NCBI GenBank assembly: GCA_004764695.1 | Contig: SMSO01000034.1 | Span: 4,650,001 to 4,714,000, forward strand | Origin: Schizochytrium sp. TIO01 | Lineage: Eukaryota; Protista; Bigyra: Labyrinthulomycetes | DNA length: 64,000 nt | Direction: 5' to 3' | Part shown: piece by piece, positions 40,123 to 47,605 of the stretch | Numbering within the stretch: position 1 is the first letter of the stretch | How the letters are laid out: each line of letters opens with the position of its first letter | Position numbers and translations under genes: made by a program | The notes under the pieces: generated by a model | Databases searched by the model: none | Told to the model about the DNA's origin: nothing | What the model saw: the letters and a program-made list of their open reading frames with translations, nothing else

Positions 40123-40704
40123 TCATGGAGACTTGGGAGACTTTTGATGCTCATAGCACCAAATCCTGACGACTTGGCCATCTTCAAGAGTCTCTCTATG
40201 TTGAAAAATACCCATTTCACGACGAATCGCCTTTGCTTTGTCCCAGCTCCATCCATGATCTTGCACCGTATGCTTAATGTAACTAAGTCTAGATGGTCCA
40301 TGTGCAAGAGCTTGTTGGAGAAAAGTACGAATCCTAGCCGCGTCATCCTGCTTAATAGGCTCAATATCTGTTTTTGCTGCTCCTGTTGCTGTTCCTGTTG
40401 ATTCTGCTTGGGAAGAGAAAGCGGAAGATGAAGACTTTAATTGTTTGCTTTCCCGTGGTAAAGGCGGAGAAGCGGTAGTCAAACATGCACTGTTTTGGTT
40501 GTCCGCTAACTTATGATTATTGATCTCACGGTTTGATACAAGAGTTGCAGAAGAGGTCTTTTTTGCATCTTCAACATTATCATGAACTTGATCTTGAAAT
40601 GCAGAAGGACGTCGCAGAGCTAATTCTGACATAGCTATTGGTGATCTTGTTATGCTATCAGTTGTATCCATTCGACTTAAGACCGGCGCGTAACTTATTT
40701 TCAA
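40123..40704 (-). CDS. Probable C-terminal continuation (+1 frame) of the channel gene: S/T-rich linker plus small winged-helix-like domain
   Basis: 193-codon ORF overlapping the channel stop in the +1 frame (open from ~40749). Its stop lies ~80 bp from the convergent gene's stop. Confidence 0.6.
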   Translation of the reverse strand: MKISYAPVLSRMDTTDSITRSPIAMSELALRRPSAFQDQVHDNVEDAKKTSSATLVSNREINNHKLADNQNSACLTTASPPLPRESKQLKSSSSAFSSQAESTGTATGAAKTDIEPIKQDDAARIRTFLQQALAHGPSRLSYIKHTVQDHGWSWDKAKAIRREMGIFQHRETLEDGQVVRIWCYEHQKSPKSP

Positions 40705-43700
40705 GCTCTTGGAAACGAATAGATTGCTTATCCATGGCCTCGCTATAGTTTAGAAGAGCGGCATTGGCCATTGCGGGAGGATGTTGTGCTGGCAAGCTCG
40801 TATTATGACTACTTGGTTCAATAACTTCAAAAGCTTCCTCTTCACGCTTCTCGTAGATTGCTTCATTGCTCATGTTTGCAATAATTTTGCGCGAATCCCA
40901 ATAATTAATATCCAAGTCTCTGAATAGATGCTTATGTTTGCGATTTGTTCGCAATGACGATTCAATTTCCTCGGTAATAAATTGCTCCCACATTGAATCA
41001 CTTGCTTCTCTCTCCTTGGGATACACATCTGTAACAATAGCAATGAGTAAATTAATATTAATTGTTGCAAACATGATGAAGCTTGCTGCTGCCAGTAGCC
41101 CAGACCAAGAAGTTGACGCGATCAATTCAAGCCCATCCCAACTCTCTACAAATGGGGTATAGAATAACGAGTAAAATGTGCTCCCAAAAGTCATCCAAGG
41201 ACTTACACTTGATCCAAATCCCACATGAAAACAAAAAGCTAGTAAAAAGCATGCAGCGGCTACCACGAGTAGATAGATACCAACGGCAAGGTTAGTAATG
41301 GTATTGGTGAGTGCAACAATTACAGGACCAATATCTGGAATTGACCGTGCAGCACGTAATAGTGGAATCATGCTTAGCAGAAAGATCACAGCTACCGTTC
41401 GACGCTCGGTTTGTAAGAGGCGGTGATGTTCGCCCCAAGAAGAAAATTCACTACCTGAAACATTAGTTCGGATACCCCTGGTCTGAGCAAAAGCTTGATA
41501 ATCGATCACAAGAACCGTAAGCAAAAGTGCAAGCACAACAAAAACGACTGCTGGAGGCTTCCGAGAACGAATAATTTTTGAGTGCATAGCGTAAGAGAGT
41601 AACAGAAGTATCATCCCCGCAACTGTGCCTTCGAACTCCCTTGAGGGAGGAAACCGACGATAATCGACTCTAAACTCCTGGACACTCACGTCCAGACTTG
41701 GACCCGCATAGAACGAAGTTGACATAGTAGCTTGAACTATGCCATAGATGTTATGAAGTGGGTTATATAGGTTCATTTCGATCGAGAGGACTTGCATACC
41801 ACCAGTGTCATTGTGCCGTATAGTCGAGTTCATAACTGTTGAAATTTGTTCCGAAGTGCTTTGAGCCAGAATTGATACAAATGATTCACCTGTCTCTCTC
41901 AAAGACTCACTTGCGTCTTGCCAAACTAGGCCATGAGCAAGCAAAGGTAAGACAGTTTGCTCCAACTTTAATCCTCCAATTACACGATTGTATCCCATAT
42001 AGATGAGTGAATCATCTGTGATATTAAATCTAAATTGATTCGGGAACTCATTCACTAACCAATTCTCCATGTCCTCAAAGGACTTCACATCTTGTACGTT
42101 GTCCTCAATTTCTGCCTTCAAACTTTCTCGCCAGCTACGTTCTGCTGTAACATCATAATCAGGCGCAAGTTGAACCATCATTGCAAACCATACTAAAATT
42201 CCAATCAGAACTGTAGTTCGTCGAAAGAACTGCCACATTGCATGCCGGTTTCGCCAGCGACGTACGGAATGAGACAAGTTTAACACATCAATAAGCTCAG
42301 TCGATGCTACAAGCTGAAGTTCTAGCTCTTTGAGGATGTGCTGCAGCTCGCGAAGCGGCTTATTTGCAATCGACTCCGGAGTCAACTCGGAACGAGCATG
42401 TTGCAGAATGCCTCCTCTCTTGGAATCCTTTAGTAGTGAAGCGCGAGGTCCATATTGAAAAGGAGCTGATGGAAAGCCCCAGTGCATGGAGCGTTCTTGA
42501 ACCTCTGCTCGTAATCTTTCAACATCATCAGCAATATGAATGTGTTGGTATAATGCTCGGTAGTAAGGTGTGAGCGGCCCTGCATCCGTCCCAGGCTCCT
42601 CCATAATAGGATCCGCAGATAGCTCGATCAGACTTTTAACAACCTCGATCTTTTCATTCTGGACAGCCATAGACAGGGGCGAGTACATTGAAATGTGTTG
42701 CTTAGTTTCCTTAACGTTGGAGTGACTTACTCCAAGCGGTGCAACGGCTGTTGAGACGAGCTTAGGTACAACTAAACGTAAAACACTCCATCGTGTGCGA
42801 GCTTTAGCGCTTTGTGGGATTGGGCTATCTCCTTTCGTTTGTGAAACTGAAAAACTTACAGATTTGTTCATCTGCGGATCGTCCAATGACATGAGTTCTT
42901 CAATCTCCAAGCTCTTGTCAACCTTTGCCATTTCTGAAAGCTGAAGAGTTTCTACCCCCCGTAAGCTAAGATTGACAATTTCATCGACTTGATAAAGCTG
43001 CTGCAAATGACGAACAAGGTATTCACAGCATTTAGTATGCCCTTGATATGCAGCATGATGCAATGCAGTGAAACCAAGATTATCAGGGATGAGAACTTTT
43101 ACATCTACTTCTGACTCTACAAGTATCTTGCACATTTCAAGATCACCTATATACGCTGCAAGAGACACCGCTGTAAAGCCGTTTGTATCTCGCCGATTTG
43201 CATCAACATGGAGTGCCAACAAATGCCGTACAGTTGAATAGTGCCGACCAAGCACCGCAAGAGAAAGCGCTGTTCTTCCGTTCTTGTTCTTTACGTTAAG
43301 ATCGGCACTTGCATTCTGTACCGAATGAGATAGAATAATATTGATCGAATCAAGATGCCCACGGCGCACAGCTGCAAGCAAGTATGAGTTCAACAATTGC
43401 TGGCGCATTTGATGCACATTGTGAAACGTAAGTTTTTCACATGTCATGTCAACTGATTCTCGCCTTGCCCTCTCCTGTGTTCTCTTAAGGATATTTGCAG
43501 TTGCGTTTTCGCTTACAGGGCATATTTCCCAGCCCAAACACATGATTGCCTTGATCGTCTCTTCTACGCCTTGCACCAGATCAAACTTTTCAGTTTTGTT
43601 GAGTTTCGAGTAGGGTACTAAGGATGCGTTGAGTTTGAGGTTGCTTGCGATATTTCGGTGCGGAGCATATCGCCAACCCTGGGTGATTTTCTCACGAGCC

Positions 43701-46177
43701 CAGACTTCATGAGAATTGACTGAAATGCATCGGATTAGTTCCTCCAAGTGAATCGATAAGGTGCTCGATACCTTGCTAGTATCAATCGAAGCACAACCTG
43801 GCTTATCCTCATCCCATTCCTTATCAGCATAGCGAAGAGATTTTCGGTGATCACGTCCAGTTGGCGGAGACTTGCGCAACGGCTCCTGAGTGTCTTTAGA
43901 CGGTGGCTCCAACCTGAAACCCAACAAGAGGATAAGTTTCACCGTCTCAGAGGCCATGTGCATGTTATATTTCGCTTCTTCGGCTGTGAGATCTTCAAAA
44001 GGAACTAATAAGGGATGCAGCTTAGCATTGTCGTCGCGTGTTTTAGAATATGACCAACTATCTTTAATTTTCTGCATGCACCACACATTGTGCATATTTC
44101 TCGCAAGCCTTCTCGCAAGCGCCTTCGTTGTTGGGCTTAGGCGCACCACACTCGTGTCTAAAGGTTGAGGGTCGAATGTTTGAGCAGCGTGTTCCCTTGC
44201 ATCAAAAGGTTTAATTGCTTGACAAACCCAATGCGGTTTAGTGCTGCATTCACAAAGTGAAAGGCTAAAACCTTTTGCCACTAGAGGCCCTTCGCAGTTC
44301 TTATGGCATCTCTCACGGCACACAAGGCATACATCCATCTCACATTTCGAACAATAATACATGAATTGCAGCATATGTTTGAAATCGGCACATGAGGATG
44401 TACATGTCTCTGGGGACTCGATTCGTTTTGTTAGTGCAACGAGTGCGTGGTCAATACGTATGTCATTCTCTGGAGCAAAATTCAATATGCTTTCACATCC
44501 CTCGACATCTCCCATAAGCACAAGGCGATGTAAGAGCTCTTGCATTCGTCCACGTTCAGCTGATGCATAGCAACCCATCCGCAGTAACATCCGTACTGCT
44601 TCAAGGTTATCCTTTTCGATAGCAAGATCAAGTTCTGTAATTCCCTGCTCTCGAGAGGCCTCTGCAAGAGGAGGGTGTATGGCACGATTGATTTGGAAGA
44701 CATCTTCCACGCGTTCTGCATTTGCTTCGGCGTCTTGCCATAGCTCAACCAGCGTCCGAATGACTTCAACGTTTCCATTAGCAGTGGCCAAATGTGTAAA
44801 TGAGTAATGTGCTAAAGTAAGCTCATTAATTGGCAAAGGAGCTTCAAAAAATGGCTGCCCAAGTAGTTTGCTCCACGAAAGATGCGCAAAGGCCCCACTT
44901 CTTGCCGCGTAATGTAAAGCATTCCAACCGTCCTGGTCGACAGCTTGCAAAAGTCCTACAGGACTTAGACTGTATTCGAAAAGAAGCTTGGCACACCGCG
45001 CGTGGCCTTCACTTTCTTGGGATAAAGCAAGCATTAGAGCGGTTCGTCGGTACATGTCTATTGCTTCAATGTGGTTTGAGGCACTGTTTATTTGGAGAAG
45101 AATTTCTACAATCTCAGGTTCGCCTTGTTCGCAAGCTACAATCAAGGATGTCTGAGAGTTAGGTGGGTGCTGATGCATAGCGACAGAAGCTCTGAGTCGT
45201 TCGCTAGAAAGCATCAAGAGACGCACGCATTCTGTGCGGTAAGTGCGCGGAGCAAAATATAATGCTAAGCCCAACGGGGTAAGTCTCTGATCGTCCTGGA
45301 CTCTAGGATCGATGTCAGGACACATTCGTAAAAGAGTCTCTAGCGCTTGAATATTCCCTGAAAGGCAGCACGCATGCAGAATTGTCCTTTGACAGTAGCT
45401 CGAACGTGCATTGATATCCACAATCTTGTTAAGGCGGTCCTCAGTAAGAACCCAGTGCTCTGACTGAGCAAGAAGCAACACGGTTTCATCAATAATATTT
45501 CCTGGAATCCTATCGTACAGAGAACTTTCAATCGTAGCAACAATGTCTGTAGTTTGTACATAATGAATTTTATTTTGTGAGTTTTGCATGTGTACCTCTT
45601 CATCACCAGTATCATTTAAGGTTGCCTCTCGAAAGCAGGCGTCCTGAACAATATAGATTCGTGCATCTTGCACATGGACGCATGCATCAATCGCAGTATA
45701 TCGTGTTGCATCCCCTGCACCACAAATATAAAGATCGTCGACTGCACCAGAGCGATGCAAAATTGTTTTCATAGCCGTAAGTGTTTCTGAACCATAGTCT
45801 CGAAATGCAGAGTACGTGTCACGTTGAGGGTCTGTGCCCGTGAAGATAATATGGTTATCGATGGCAAGACGCAAAGGTGTTGCTCCACTGGTCCCCGCAA
45901 CACATTCTTCATTACGAAGACGTTGGGTGTCCCCAAGTTGTAAAATATAGCGAACTTCTCCCTTTTGCGCACCGGGGTGGTTTTCTACAAATGAACAATG
46001 CGTACATGGATGATACTTCAGGCAAATAAAGACCTCATCGAAGAATCCATCAGTCTGAAGGTGTTCGATATTTGCAAGGACCAAGTCCGGGTTGTCTGAT
46101 CGCTTATAAATATCTTCTTGCACGTGCATGAGGACCAAGCCTCGTTTCCTTCTCGGCTTTCGAGGTGTTTGGCTCAT
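40658..46177 (-). CDS. Multidomain TRP/polycystin-like cation channel: nicotinamidase-fold domain + ankyrin repeats + UBR-box-like Zn finger + 2 RyR repeats + ankyrin repeats + 6-TM PKD-type channel
   Basis: 1839-aa ORF. Ankyrin motifs (GWNALHYAARSG, GRTALSLAVLGRH, GFTALHHAAYQGH). RyR motifs (LARNMHNVW..WSYSKTRDDNAKLHPLLVPFEDL; NSHEVW..GWRY..LVPYSKL). Polycystin-like extracellular motifs (NRVIGGLKLEQ, EMNLYNPLHNIY). S6 motif INLLIAIVTDVY. Confidence 0.88.
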   Translation of the reverse strand: MSQTPRKPRRKRGLVLMHVQEDIYKRSDNPDLVLANIEHLQTDGFFDEVFICLKYHPCTHCSFVENHPGAQKGEVRYILQLGDTQRLRNEECVAGTSGATPLRLAIDNHIIFTGTDPQRDTYSAFRDYGSETLTAMKTILHRSGAVDDLYICGAGDATRYTAIDACVHVQDARIYIVQDACFREATLNDTGDEEVHMQNSQNKIHYVQTTDIVATIESSLYDRIPGNIIDETVLLLAQSEHWVLTEDRLNKIVDINARSSYCQRTILHACCLSGNIQALETLLRMCPDIDPRVQDDQRLTPLGLALYFAPRTYRTECVRLLMLSSERLRASVAMHQHPPNSQTSLIVACEQGEPEIVEILLQINSASNHIEAIDMYRRTALMLALSQESEGHARCAKLLFEYSLSPVGLLQAVDQDGWNALHYAARSGAFAHLSWSKLLGQPFFEAPLPINELTLAHYSFTHLATANGNVEVIRTLVELWQDAEANAERVEDVFQINRAIHPPLAEASREQGITELDLAIEKDNLEAVRMLLRMGCYASAERGRMQELLHRLVLMGDVEGCESILNFAPENDIRIDHALVALTKRIESPETCTSSCADFKHMLQFMYYCSKCEMDVCLVCRERCHKNCEGPLVAKGFSLSLCECSTKPHWVCQAIKPFDAREHAAQTFDPQPLDTSVVRLSPTTKALARRLARNMHNVWCMQKIKDSWSYSKTRDDNAKLHPLLVPFEDLTAEEAKYNMHMASETVKLILLLGFRLEPPSKDTQEPLRKSPPTGRDHRKSLRYADKEWDEDKPGCASIDTSKVSSTLSIHLEELIRCISVNSHEVWAREKITQGWRYAPHRNIASNLKLNASLVPYSKLNKTEKFDLVQGVEETIKAIMCLGWEICPVSENATANILKRTQERARRESVDMTCEKLTFHNVHQMRQQLLNSYLLAAVRRGHLDSINIILSHSVQNASADLNVKNKNGRTALSLAVLGRHYSTVRHLLALHVDANRRDTNGFTAVSLAAYIGDLEMCKILVESEVDVKVLIPDNLGFTALHHAAYQGHTKCCEYLVRHLQQLYQVDEIVNLSLRGVETLQLSEMAKVDKSLEIEELMSLDDPQMNKSVSFSVSQTKGDSPIPQSAKARTRWSVLRLVVPKLVSTAVAPLGVSHSNVKETKQHISMYSPLSMAVQNEKIEVVKSLIELSADPIMEEPGTDAGPLTPYYRALYQHIHIADDVERLRAEVQERSMHWGFPSAPFQYGPRASLLKDSKRGGILQHARSELTPESIANKPLRELQHILKELELQLVASTELIDVLNLSHSVRRWRNRHAMWQFFRRTTVLIGILVWFAMMVQLAPDYDVTAERSWRESLKAEIEDNVQDVKSFEDMENWLVNEFPNQFRFNITDDSLIYMGYNRVIGGLKLEQTVLPLLAHGLVWQDASESLRETGESFVSILAQSTSEQISTVMNSTIRHNDTGGMQVLSIEMNLYNPLHNIYGIVQATMSTSFYAGPSLDVSVQEFRVDYRRFPPSREFEGTVAGMILLLLSYAMHSKIIRSRKPPAVVFVVLALLLTVLVIDYQAFAQTRGIRTNVSGSEFSSWGEHHRLLQTERRTVAVIFLLSMIPLLRAARSIPDIGPVIVALTNTITNLAVGIYLLVVAAACFLLAFCFHVGFGSSVSPWMTFGSTFYSLFYTPFVESWDGLELIASTSWSGLLAAASFIMFATININLLIAIVTDVYPKEREASDSMWEQFITEEIESSLRTNRKHKHLFRDLDINYWDSRKIIANMSNEAIYEKREEEAFEVIEPSSHNTSLPAQHPPAMANAALLNYSEAMDKQSIRFQELENKLRAGLKSNGYN

Positions 46178-47605
46178 GTTGATAGCCTCCGGAAATACCT
46201 TCCCACCACCAAATTTCTGCGTGTCAAACTTTTCGCAATACCACCCGGCCGCCTTACATATGGTCCCGATCTGCCGTGCGAAGTCTCTACCAGCTTATTT
46301 GCTGCTTTGTCTGAGGTCCGCAAACACTTTTGATAGAAATATTCCTCTTCCAAACGTTGTTGCTGTCGCTGTCGCTGTCCCTCTGAACTCTGTATTGTTT
46401 TGCTGCAGCCAATACTTTAGTCTGCACACATTTCTATACCATTTGCTTCTCAAAGAGCCCAAGCTACAGCCACTTAAAGGTTGTCTCTGTAACAACCTGA
46501 TCAGTCTTGGGACTTCCTTGCACTTCTCGTATTACCATCTCATTTGTCCGTTTCTAAAGGATACTCCTTATGGGTCCCCCATTTCTTTCTACAATATTCA
46601 TTTCGTCACAAAGGCATTATGACATAAAACATCTTCCCATATTTGGTTCTGAAGAATGTCAATAGGCGATGCATTGCTCGAATTGCAGGATAATCACGTG
46701 GGTATGTATGTGCCTCATCCGTACTTAGCTATTGCACTTCAGATGGAAAGCCTGTACTACTAGGTGTATTTAGCACTACCAAGGCATCTACTAGGTACTA
46801 CCTACCGGTATCAGTAATTGGTAAATAGGCCACTACTACCGCAGGGTTAATTGATTGAACATTATATTATTCAATTTATTTGACCAACAACTTAAACTCC
46901 AAGTTGGTTGGCGAATTAATATAAAACAATCATGCGTTGCTATTCCCTACCCGGCAGAGCATTTCTGCCATTAGGTCCTTTTTTCTACCAGCAACCGTAC
47001 TTCTTCTTGGAGATGTAATAGCCTGAGTGATCGACAGCTGCAAGCTTGGCATCTGTATTTCGTGAAGCCCTCATTCATAGTCTCCTTTTGCAATTAAGGC
47101 ACCTATGTTGGATCTCAGTTAGTTCTTCTTGACGATAAAACATTTGCACTAGCGAACTAAAGTTTACGATGTGTACGAGATATTGATAAGAGTCATTTAC
47201 AAGAAATAATAATAGTCCCATTCGGCCCTTGTGGTATCTTTGATGTTTTGGACCCTTCTTCCGTCCGATCCGCTAATGAACTATCATTTCAAGGTTAAGC
47301 AAGAATGACTTCGGCACCGATCCAAGGAGGCAACAATACCGATTCCTAGACCGCGGGGTGTATTCACGTTTCGTGTACCTTGTCTTGAGTAAAGCACGCA
47401 AAAGGTTCGTGGGTTGTAGCAGGATCCGGTGCGCACTTTTACAGTCTTGAGCTCATCTCAACAACTTCTCTGAGCATACGAAATACCTGCGAAAGTCGCG
47501 CCCAAAATTGAAATACCGAAAGTTCTAACGCAAGAGCATAAGTGCACCTCCCAAGTTGAAAATCAAGGCTCGCGGGAGTGTTTGGAAAAACTAGCACAAC
47601 CAAGG

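Follow-up and report, generated by a model that had tools for sequence, protein, structure and literature searches.

A nicotinamidase-like domain lacking the catalytic triad is fused to a polycystin-like channel in Schizochytrium

Gene and domain architecture

The analyzed window, a 64,000-nt stretch of contig SMSO01000034.1 from the thraustochytrid Schizochytrium sp. TIO01, contains on its minus strand a long ORF that encodes, from the N terminus, a pseudo-nicotinamidase domain, ankyrin repeats, a Cys-rich finger, two RyR domains, further ankyrin repeats and a six-TM PKD-like pore module. Its main features are as follows:

40658..46177, minus strand: whole ORF, intronless and uninterrupted, at least 1839 aa (1839 aa as read in the window)
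45536..46141, minus strand: pseudo-nicotinamidase domain, aa 13-214 of the ORF
43907..44176, minus strand: first RyR domain, aa 668-757 (PF02026, 159 bits, two stretches), with a second copy downstream
41003..41545, minus strand: pore or ion-transport region, aa 1545-1725, with PF00520 and PF08016 just under cut-off

The RyR pair spans aa 668 to about 900, N-terminal of the pore and flanked on both sides by ankyrin arrays. A sequence-only reading of the locus had proposed that a nicotinamidase-like domain and a channel are fused in one ORF, and the frame is indeed continuous over 1839 codons, with no frameshifts or stops in the domain. The product is near-identical to the Logan protein P0001 and has an orthologue, P0002, in Hondaea. 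The P0001 gene call begins 18 codons inside the start of the window ORF, but the first strand of the domain, located upstream of that start, is conserved between Hondaea (ALVIVHAQED) and the window (GLVLMHVQED). The stretch was absent from every run recorded as RNA. In the low-depth run X5, the ORF is covered in pieces and coverage ends at 46413, ~236 nt upstream of the ATG; because the RNA status of this run is a guess, it was left out of the expression evidence.

Homology and fold of the N-terminal domain

Using phmmer against PDB sequences, aa 13-214 matched Acinetobacter baumannii nicotinamidase (2wt9, E 1.5e-13) and Drosophila nicotinamidase (9u8m, E 7e-9), with weaker matches to the Pyrococcus horikoshii and Leishmania nicotinamidases and to yeast Pnc1. 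The NCBIfam model NF008623 (nicotinamidase/pyrazinamidase, PncA) was also detected (E 2.1e-10), at 40.8 bits and, hence, below its 174-bit cut-off. A Pfam search with a 233-aa piece gave no match of the domain to PF00857 (cut-off 27 bits) even at E 10, a miss that we do not hold against homology since phmmer, NCBIfam and the fold search concur. Of the suggested membership in the PncA/Pnc1 family, homology, thus, stands while detection by the Pfam model fails.

An AlphaFold2 model computed from a 103-sequence alignment reached a pLDDT of 89.9 and a pTM of 0.86; it depends on this alignment of real enzymes, and single-sequence prediction of the domain gave a pLDDT of only 36. In a Foldseek search of the model against the PDB, the best eleven matches were all nicotinamidases or pyrazinamidases; 2wt9 scored E 6e-17 with TM 0.73/0.81. 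The modeled domain, therefore, would adopt the isochorismatase-like alpha/beta cysteine-hydrolase fold, on the presence of which the initial proposal had been made to depend. Together, these data confirm the domain as a genuine nicotinamidase homologue, with a resemblance far beyond chance.

Loss of catalytic and binding residues

Residues were compared in an alignment with 101 stand-alone relatives. The five PncA/Pnc1 blocks noted by the sequence-only reading were all found in the given order and place, with key residues replaced:

46109-46132, minus strand: block LMHVQEDI, aa 16-23
46124..46126, minus strand: H18 in place of the catalytic Asp (Asp in 89 of 101 relatives; His also in Hondaea P0002)
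45989-46018, minus strand: block KYHPCTHCSF, aa 54-63
46016..46018, minus strand: K54 in place of a metal-binding Asp (Asp in 94 of 101; aligned to D54 of 2wt9; Arg in Hondaea)
46010-46012, minus strand: H56, second metal ligand, kept (aligned to H56 of 2wt9)
45881-45916, minus strand: block RNEECVAGTSGA, aa 88-99
45905..45916, minus strand: R88-N89-E90-E91 in place of W-P-x-H, which holds the clamp Trp and the third metal ligand, His
45803-45841, minus strand: block TGTDPQRDTYSAF, aa 113-125
45839..45841, minus strand: T113 in place of the catalytic Lys (Lys in 94 of 101; Thr in Hondaea)
45683-45721, minus strand: block GAGDATRYTAIDA, aa 153-165
45707..45709, minus strand: A157 at the nucleophile Cys column (Cys in 85 of 101), with a two-residue deletion just before it

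The deletion removes D-[YF] of the TDYCV motif (GAGD--ATRY versus GLATDYCVQY). Nicotinamidase catalysis requires the Asp-Lys-Cys triad, and these enzymes hold nicotinamide through its pyridine nitrogen, which is coordinated to the active-site metal (PMC6271260). With H18, T113, A157 and the deletion, the claimed loss of the triad is borne out. The accompanying list of replaced residues was incomplete, as it missed the replacements of two metal ligands and of the clamp. Of the Asp-His-His metal site, the window copy has K54, H56 and E91, retaining one of three ligands, and both residues of the aromatic clamp are gone (Phe to I23, Trp to R88); the metal His is otherwise present in 100 and the Trp in 89 of the 101 stand-alone relatives. 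Kept residues comprise H56, H60, C92, G114, D120, Y122, S123 and F125. In homology, predicted fold and motif order, the domain, thus, resembles the nicotinamidases and pyrazinamidases (PncA, Pnc1, Naam; EC 3.5.1.19; 2wt9, 9u8m, 2h0r), but it has lost the triad, two of three metal ligands, the Phe/Trp clamp and two residues and, unlike these soluble enzymes, is part of a channel polypeptide.

Channel class

The window pore scored just below threshold with PF00520 (Ion_trans; 24.2 versus 25 bits) and below it with PF08016 (PKD_channel; 17.6 versus 22.4 bits). Related proteins gave higher PF08016 scores (P0005, 28.7; P0017, 51.8; P0123, 53.4 bits), and P0017 and P0123 also match PF20519 (Polycystin_dom). 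As judged by sequence, the channel core appears polycystin/PKD-like, a class assigned through these relatives; direct phmmer matches of the pore region to PDB sequences were weak (for example, PKD1L3, E 0.42). Up to E 1, the same search gave no match to a TRPV chain. As a control, the Rigifila transcript P0105 matched TRPV6 (E 2.4e-70) and Nanchung (E 3.5e-58), and a TRPV-type core for the window channel was rejected. P0105 encodes a true TRPV channel with an intact nicotinamidase fused C-terminally. Its architecture is unrelated to that of the thraustochytrid PKD-type fusion, and the two fusions are independent.

A site-preserving paralogue and a wider fusion family

The same genome encodes a second protein of identical domain order:

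G000:C13, L007:1156-7482: subfamily A paralogue P0005, 2108 aa

P0005 shares 35% identity with the window protein overall and 41% in the pore region, and it has subfamily A orthologues in P0155 (Hondaea), P0156, P0003 and P0010. In its nicotinamidase domain, Ala replaces the catalytic Lys, while Asp and Cys of the triad, the complete three-ligand metal site and the clamp are preserved. It passes PF00857 and nearly attains the PncA equivalog cut-off of NF008623 (169.3 versus 174 bits). Between the two genera, Schizochytrium and Hondaea, this domain is 92% identical, compared to 69% for the whole protein, of which it is the best-conserved part.

At least 12 proteins share this domain order, among them P0003 (MMETSP) and P0017 (EukProt), which are single ORFs from transcriptomes. 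The catalytic Lys is missing in all 12 channel-linked domains examined, being Thr in the window and Hondaea proteins and Ala, Ser, Ile or Leu in the other ten. The site is also degenerate in P0042, P0123 and P0010, with the domain still present, which argues for a noncatalytic role. The data show descent of the window domain from a nicotinamidase domain that was itself linked to a channel. A search of the available literature for a nicotinamidase-channel fusion or chanzyme returned no such description, and we regard these fusions as a family for which we found no prior description.

Conservation and selection in subfamily B

In the phylogenetic tree, subfamily B forms the clade (P0006,(window,P0002)) with support of 100/99 on a long stem of 0.73, separate from subfamily A. 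Evidence on this subfamily comprises two close B-type sequences and P0006; whether started from the window or from the Hondaea domain, word-index searches gave just the same two B-type proteins, and metagenome contigs searched with alignment-derived patterns and with a degenerate pattern for QRLRNEECVAGT yielded no B-type orthologue DNA.

Hondaea P0002 carries the same catalytic, metal-site and clamp changes, with Arg at the K54 position. Window and Hondaea proteins are 55% identical in the domain, 53% overall and 52% in the channel part, compared to 33-45% in unconstrained linkers of the same two genera. Strain SNPs across the whole ORF comprised 23 synonymous and 11 nonsynonymous changes (pN/pS about 0.14), of which three synonymous and no nonsynonymous ones fell inside the domain. 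The sequence-only reading had asked whether orthologues share the triad loss without decay of the domain, and P0002, the identity values and the 3:0 SNP ratio agree with this. Identity is unevenly distributed, with one stretch standing out:

45785..46009, minus strand: aa 57-131, former active-site loops, the best-conserved part of the domain between genera

In 15-aa windows, identity is mostly 60-100% across aa 57-131 and 20-50% at the domain periphery; aa 82-96, around R88-E91, are identical at 15 of 15 positions in Hondaea. Seven of nine replaced positions are identical between the two genera and the remaining two are conservative, as compared to 91 of 182 identical positions elsewhere, a difference that is not significant (Fisher P 0.098). 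P0006, the sister in the B clade, has different residues (N, D, K, V and S) at replaced positions.

Interpretation of the window domain

We hold with middling confidence that the nicotinamidase-fold pseudoenzyme serves as an N-terminal cytosolic regulatory or structural module of a PKD/polycystin-type cation-channel subunit. Most likely, the window copy has been retained for regulation, as a pseudoenzyme module and not as a nicotinamide sensor. Judging from its residues, the subfamily B domain would not hydrolyze nicotinamide and would have lost the canonical metal-coordinated hold on it. The replacements seem to introduce paired opposite charges (Asp to Lys/Arg, His to Glu, Trp to Arg and Asn to Glu), which suggests a metal-free, salt-bridged and largely filled pocket. 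Apparently under purifying selection, the domain may touch the ankyrin/RyR cytosolic assembly and thereby influence gating. The window B subunit may be a nonsensing partner of a site-preserving A subunit, by analogy to the heteromeric Nan/Iav and OSM-9/OCR-4 channels, and nicotinamide sensing, if any occurs in the family, would most plausibly reside in subfamily A. As a separate observation that runs against this reading, the well-conserved active-site loops and six of the kept residues would fit a remodeled ligand-binding pocket.

Such a pocket is the basis of an alternative that we consider rather unlikely but still worth weighing, in which H18, K54, H56, H60, R88, E90 and E91 form a neofunctionalized, more highly charged site that binds another small molecule and regulates gating. 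Candidate ligands would be an anionic NAD-derived metabolite (nicotinate, NaMN, ADP-ribose or NAADP) or a lipid head group. The replaced residues are nearly invariant between genera, within the fully identical block, and the long stem of the B clade followed by conservation is what one would expect had the function changed. An anion would be suited by the two basic residues gained, but the equal number of acidic gains (E21 and E91) is just as compatible with internal salt bridges, the sequence does not point to any particular ligand and the divergent residues of P0006 indicate that subfamily B as a whole does not share one fixed site.

More doubtful is the proposal of the sequence-only reading that the dead domain has kept the ability to bind nicotinamide or nicotinate and, as a nonhydrolyzing sensor, controls channel gating. 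The fold is kept, as are H56, H60, D120, Y122, S123 and F125; conservation peaks in the former active-site loops; nicotinamidase domains associate with TRP-superfamily channels at the family level; and invertebrate TRPV channels are known to respond to nicotinamide as an agonist (PMC5064019). However, the pyridine nitrogen binds the active-site metal (PMC6271260), yet two of three ligands are now Lys and Glu; Ile and Arg have taken the place of the clamp Phe and Trp; and the two-residue deletion takes out the pre-Cys loop that helps form the oxyanion hole. Moreover, domain conservation falls from 92% in paralogue A to 55% in the window copy, as expected if an ancestral ligand constraint was lost. 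With two metal ligands and both clamp aromatics replaced, canonical binding of nicotinamide or nicotinate by the window copy is unlikely, and the proposal was not borne out for this domain, in which K54, E91, I23 and R88 replace binding residues.

We give still less credence to the domain being an evolutionary relic, itself functionless and surviving only as an aid to folding or trafficking or because its loss is yet to come. All catalytic residues and most of those for binding are gone, and the domain is conserved no better than the protein as a whole. Yet it matches the pore module and exceeds the linkers in identity, shows neither disruptions nor nonsynonymous strain SNPs and persists throughout the family, although the site has degenerated repeatedly. 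A gene-model artefact, with a separate upstream gene and a fusion that is apparent through ORF read-through, is hardly credible: the lack of the stretch in RNA runs and the shorter P0001 gene call are outweighed by the continuous ORF, the at least 12 proteins of the same domain order, including transcript-derived P0003 and P0017, and the strand conserved in Hondaea upstream of the P0001 start.

Wider context

Nicotinamide activates invertebrate TRPV channels as an endogenous agonist, which is why nicotinamidase is an insecticide target. The fusions described here bear on where nicotinamide acts and on the age of the nicotinamide-channel link. The data show that nicotinamidase domains and TRP-superfamily pores were fused on at least two independent occasions, N-terminally in the PKD-type channels of thraustochytrids and other protists and C-terminally in the TRPV of the Rigifila transcript. 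By classic gene-fusion logic, this points to an ancient link in function between NAD salvage and cation-channel gating. The suggested Rosetta-stone fusion, thus, finds support at the family level, from paralogue A in the same genome and the independent Rigifila TRPV-nicotinamidase, but not in the window copy, where the binding residues are gone. Two paralogues in one genome, A with its binding site kept and B fully dead, constitute a natural experiment on the role of a channel-borne pseudoenzyme domain. As thraustochytrids are cultivable and genetically tractable, this question is directly testable.

Animals offer a functional parallel, as a nicotinamidase is likewise paired with ankyrin-bearing TRP-superfamily channels. 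Nicotinamide acts as an agonist of invertebrate TRPV channels, and OSM-9/OCR-4 and Nan/Iav are heteromers of two paralogous subunits (PMC5064019); the background on these channels and PNC-1 given in the sequence-only reading was correct (PMC5064019, PMC9683716). In contrast to the window protein, with its PKD-like pore and fused dead domain, animals have PNC-1 or Naam as a separate gene and a TRPV channel. A joint reading, which we offer tentatively and with low confidence, is that TRP-superfamily channels have, from ancient times, carried nicotinamidase domains as their own nicotinamide sensors or signal terminators. Both subfamily A and the TRPV fusion of Rigifila would then be nicotinamide-regulated channel-enzymes and the dead B protein a pseudoenzyme partner subunit, animals would keep the same circuit with enzyme and channel encoded apart (Naam/PNC-1 plus Nan/Iav or OSM-9/OCR-4) and the thraustochytrid A domain would be the only nicotinamidase feeding NAPRT.

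The coupling of NAD salvage to a channel parallels TRPM2 and ADP-ribose. TRPM2 is a channel-enzyme in early-branching lineages, and its NUDT9-homology domain is catalytically dead in vertebrates (PMC6461439, PMC4974056). Like TRPM2, the window ORF places a homologue of an NAD-metabolite hydrolase and a TRP-superfamily pore on one polypeptide, and both TRPM2 lineages and the nicotinamidase-channel family include active-looking and dead versions. The two differ in that TRPM2 carries a C-terminal Nudix domain on a TRPM channel and the window protein an N-terminal cysteine-hydrolase homologue on a PKD-like one; ligand binding is demonstrated for TRPM2, whereas the window domain is known from sequence and a model.

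Closer in lineage, the stramenopile PKDRR of oomycetes combines a PKD-type pore with two RyR domains, as does the window protein; the text of the PKDRR paper contains neither 'nicotinamid-' nor 'isochorismatase' (PMC7399828). The order of a PKD channel followed by two C-terminal RyR domains is not that of the window protein, in which the RyR pair precedes the pore and lies between ankyrin arrays.

Architecture of the channel ORF and its N-terminal domain

Two features of the window define the gene under study:

40658-46177, minus strand: channel ORF, a single uninterrupted frame of 1839 codons
45535-46141, minus strand: nicotinamidase-like domain, residues 13-214, at the extreme N-terminus of the ORF

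Pfam models placed two arrays of ankyrin repeats along the ORF, with a pair of RyR domains (PF02026, 159 bits) between them, with an ion-transport/PKD-channel region near the C-terminus that scored slightly under the Pfam cut-offs. TRPV identity was rejected for this channel by a phmmer search of the pore region against the PDB. The ORF ends in ...ELENKLRA GLKSNGYN and stops earlier than P0001, a near-identical Logan protein (1999 aa, 99% identical), and P0002, the orthologue from Hondaea, both of which extend into a conserved C-terminal domain (...GPSRLSYIKHTVQDHGWSWDKAKAIRREMG...). This early stop, with the 3′ end at window 40123-40749, is due to an intron, to a break in the frame or to faulty assembly and leaves the nicotinamidase finding unaffected. 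Small indels among four strains (+C, +CTAC, -4, -12) occurred in the upstream intergenic region at 46734-46883, with none of them inside the ORF between 41200 and 46177. Among the sequencing runs recorded as RNA, none contained the stretch.

All five motif blocks from which the sequence-only reading had recognized a nicotinamidase-derived domain are present within residues 13-214. The Pfam Isochorismatase model (PF00857) did not match this N-terminal piece. The resemblance proved genuine by phmmer, NCBIfam and fold search. Using phmmer against all PDB sequences, we recovered 2wt9, the nicotinamidase of A. baumannii, at E 1.5e-13 and 9u8m, its Drosophila counterpart, at E 7e-9, with weaker matches to P. 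horikoshii, Leishmania and yeast Pnc1 proteins. The NCBIfam nicotinamidase/pyrazinamidase equivalog model matched at E 2.1e-10 with 40.8 bits, far under its 174-bit cut-off. A wide phmmer protein search returned 350 matches at E ≤ 0.001, and the roughly 40 of these that were scanned were Isochorismatase-domain proteins, P0038 excepted. An AlphaFold2 model built with a 103-sequence alignment (pLDDT 89.9, pTM 0.86) was submitted to Foldseek, where the best eleven PDB matches were all nicotinamidases/pyrazinamidases (2wt9: E 6e-17, TM 0.73/0.81).

Loss of the catalytic and metal sites

Site residues were compared in an alignment with 101 stand-alone and 12 fused relatives.

Active-site positions of the window domain; counts refer to the stand-alone set (n=101)
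Catalytic Asp (89/101): H18
Catalytic Lys (94/101): T113
Nucleophile Cys (85/101): A157, preceded by a 2-residue deletion
Metal ligand Asp (94/101): K54
Metal ligand His (96/101): H56, retained
Metal ligand His (100/101): E91
Clamp Phe (91/101): I23
Clamp Trp (89/101): R88
Other position, Asn (75/101): E21
Other position, Pro (92/101): N89

The loss of the Asp-Lys-Cys triad was thus borne out and, because nicotinamidase activity needs the triad (PMC6271260), the domain is predicted to be catalytically dead. In these enzymes, the pyridine nitrogen of the substrate is coordinated to the metal (PMC6271260); as metal ligands are replaced here, the canonical mode of holding nicotinamide also appears to be lost, a point absent from the sequence-only reading. 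With neither the triad nor the metal site preserved, the domain would not count functionally as a nicotinamidase.

Conservation of the degenerate domain

The closest named protein, P0002 from Hondaea fermentalgiana (2017 aa), shares the architecture of the window ORF and carries the same replacements, with H, E, V, R, H, R, N, E and T at the site positions, followed by Ala with the same deletion; this relationship suggests that the source organism is a thraustochytrid-like protist. Identity between the two genera was 55% for the domain, 53% for the whole protein, 52% for the pore region, 71-72% for the RyR domains and 33-45% for the linkers. The most conserved part of the domain comprised the former active-site loops (aa 57-131), including a block identical at 15/15 positions, GDTQRLRNEECVAGT. 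Contigs from four strains differed from the ORF at 23 synonymous and 11 non-synonymous sites (pN/pS ~0.14), with three synonymous and zero non-synonymous differences inside the domain. Judged from these sequence comparisons, the domain is not decaying. Only two close subfamily B-type sequences exist (subfamily B being the clade of P0006, the window ORF and P0002), and two scans of metagenome contigs found no further DNA of this type.

A site-preserving paralogue and NAD salvage

A six-frame search located a second copy on another contig of the same genome (G000:C13:1778156-1784482, plus strand; L007:1156-7482), encoding 2108 aa identical to P0005. Its domain order is that of the window ORF: nicotinamidase, ankyrin, Zn finger, two RyR domains, ankyrin and PKD channel. 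The N-terminal domain of P0005 scores above the PF00857 cut-off (76 bits at genome level, 72 bits for the protein), nearly reaches the PncA equivalog cut-off (169.3 versus 174 bits) and retains Asp, Cys, three metal ligands and the clamp, with Ala at the catalytic Lys position. Between this genome and Hondaea (P0155), this subfamily A domain is 92% identical, compared to 69% for the protein overall, and is the best-conserved part of its protein. It is a better candidate than the window domain for a nicotinamide-binding module.

Trees of full-length proteins and of N-terminal halves separated subfamily A (P0005, P0155, P0156, P0003, P0010 and P0009) from subfamily B, resolved as (P0006,(window,P0002)) with support of 100/99 and a long stem. 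P0006 is intermediate, retaining the first metal Asp and His, with Asp replaced by Asn, the second metal His by Val and Lys by Ser, and Cys lost. These data show that the window domain arose when a channel-borne domain with a preserved site was duplicated.

The genome encodes a clear nicotinate phosphoribosyltransferase (G000:C30, L008:499-2175; TIGR01513, 517.6 bits), which was the sole PF04095 (NAPRTase-family) match; six-frame searches, which give lower bounds, revealed no second match of NAMPT type and no stand-alone nicotinamidase. PF00857 matched only the subfamily A paralogue and a short, 168-aa YcaC/ISOC-like protein (G000:C24, L006:3328-3834). It may be that the cell has no protein of nicotinamidase type besides the A domain on the channel, a lead rather than proof since such searches set lower bounds.

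Proposed role of the window domain

Our analysis shows a nicotinamidase-fold pseudoenzyme that is retained under purifying selection and makes up the cytosolic N-terminus of a channel subunit, probably of PKD type. From its residues, we infer that nicotinamide is neither hydrolysed nor held in the canonical way. Among the replacements, gains of positive charge (Asp to Lys/Arg, Trp to Arg) are paired with gains of negative charge (His to Glu, Asn to Glu), and this opposite-charge pairing suggests salt bridges that would stand in place of the metal and fill the predicted pocket. The domain might then have a regulatory or structural part in the cytosolic assembly and, by analogy to heteromeric Nan/Iav and OSM-9/OCR-4, may be a non-sensing partner of subfamily A. 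We give an even chance to the whole reading of a retained regulatory or structural module without canonical nicotinamide binding. A pocket remodelled for another, perhaps anionic, ligand is a tentative alternative. The sensor for nicotinamide or nicotinate proposed in the sequence-only reading is unlikely: the dead enzyme stands, with the triad replaced, while K54, E91, I23 and R88 speak against canonical nicotinamide binding. A relic is improbable, as identity between genera is not lower in the domain than in the pore region, and a gene-model artefact is hardly credible.

The window domain can be likened to NUDT9-H of TRPM2, which works as an enzyme in early-branching lineages but has no catalytic activity in vertebrates (PMC6461439, PMC4974056). 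Oomycete PKDRR channels share the combination of pore and RyR domains but differ in domain order (PMC7399828); the text of that paper contains neither ‘nicotinamid-’ nor ‘isochorismatase’. In the literature searched, we found no description of a nicotinamidase-channel fusion; TRP-superfamily channels to which a domain of enzyme origin is fused are a known kind.

Repeated site loss and related fusions

Across NCBI, JGI, MMETSP, EukProt, ENA and Logan, at least 12 proteins combine a nicotinamidase-like domain with ankyrin repeats and, as a rule, RyR repeats as well; the majority are full length and have a PKD-type pore, and a few are fragments or had no pore detected. The catalytic Lys occurred in 0/12 channel-linked domains examined (nine Ala, the rest Thr, Ser, Ile or Leu), compared to 94/101 stand-alone proteins. 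Further degeneration arose several times, with the domain retained in every case: in subfamily B, in P0042 (sister of the intact P0016; Asp, both metal ligands, Trp and Cys lost), in P0123 (Asn, Ile and Ala) and in P0010 (Cys to Thr). Such repeated site loss with domain retention is the pattern expected if the worth of the domain on the channel is non-catalytic.

P0105, an 848-aa transcript ORF labelled Rigifila ramosa (EukProt EP00004_Rigifila_ramosa_P007689), joins a true TRPV channel (residues 14-571; TRPV6 E 2.4e-70, Nanchung 3.5e-58, Inactive 1.7e-54) to a nicotinamidase (residues 644-847; 2wt9 E 1.7e-54) in which the Asp-Lys-Cys triad and every metal ligand are preserved. It appears to be a second, independent and differently ordered TRP-channel/nicotinamidase fusion, although its source, one transcriptome assembly, could be chimeric or contaminated. 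TRPV channels are activated by nicotinamide in animals (PMC5064019, PMC9683716), so that P0105 would place an intact-site enzyme on this channel class.

Nicotinamidase-type domains also occurred in many other eukaryotic signalling architectures (P0027, P0075, P0041, P0092, P0032, P0037/P0109, P0157 and P0004), with cNMP-binding, PP2C phosphatase, PH, FYVE, EF-hand and NUDIX partners; further forms comprised a SMODS-associated NUDIX plus ankyrin protein (3051 aa) and four tandem nicotinamidase-type copies. This variety of partners hints at a wider use of nicotinamidase-type domains as a metabolite-linked signalling module.
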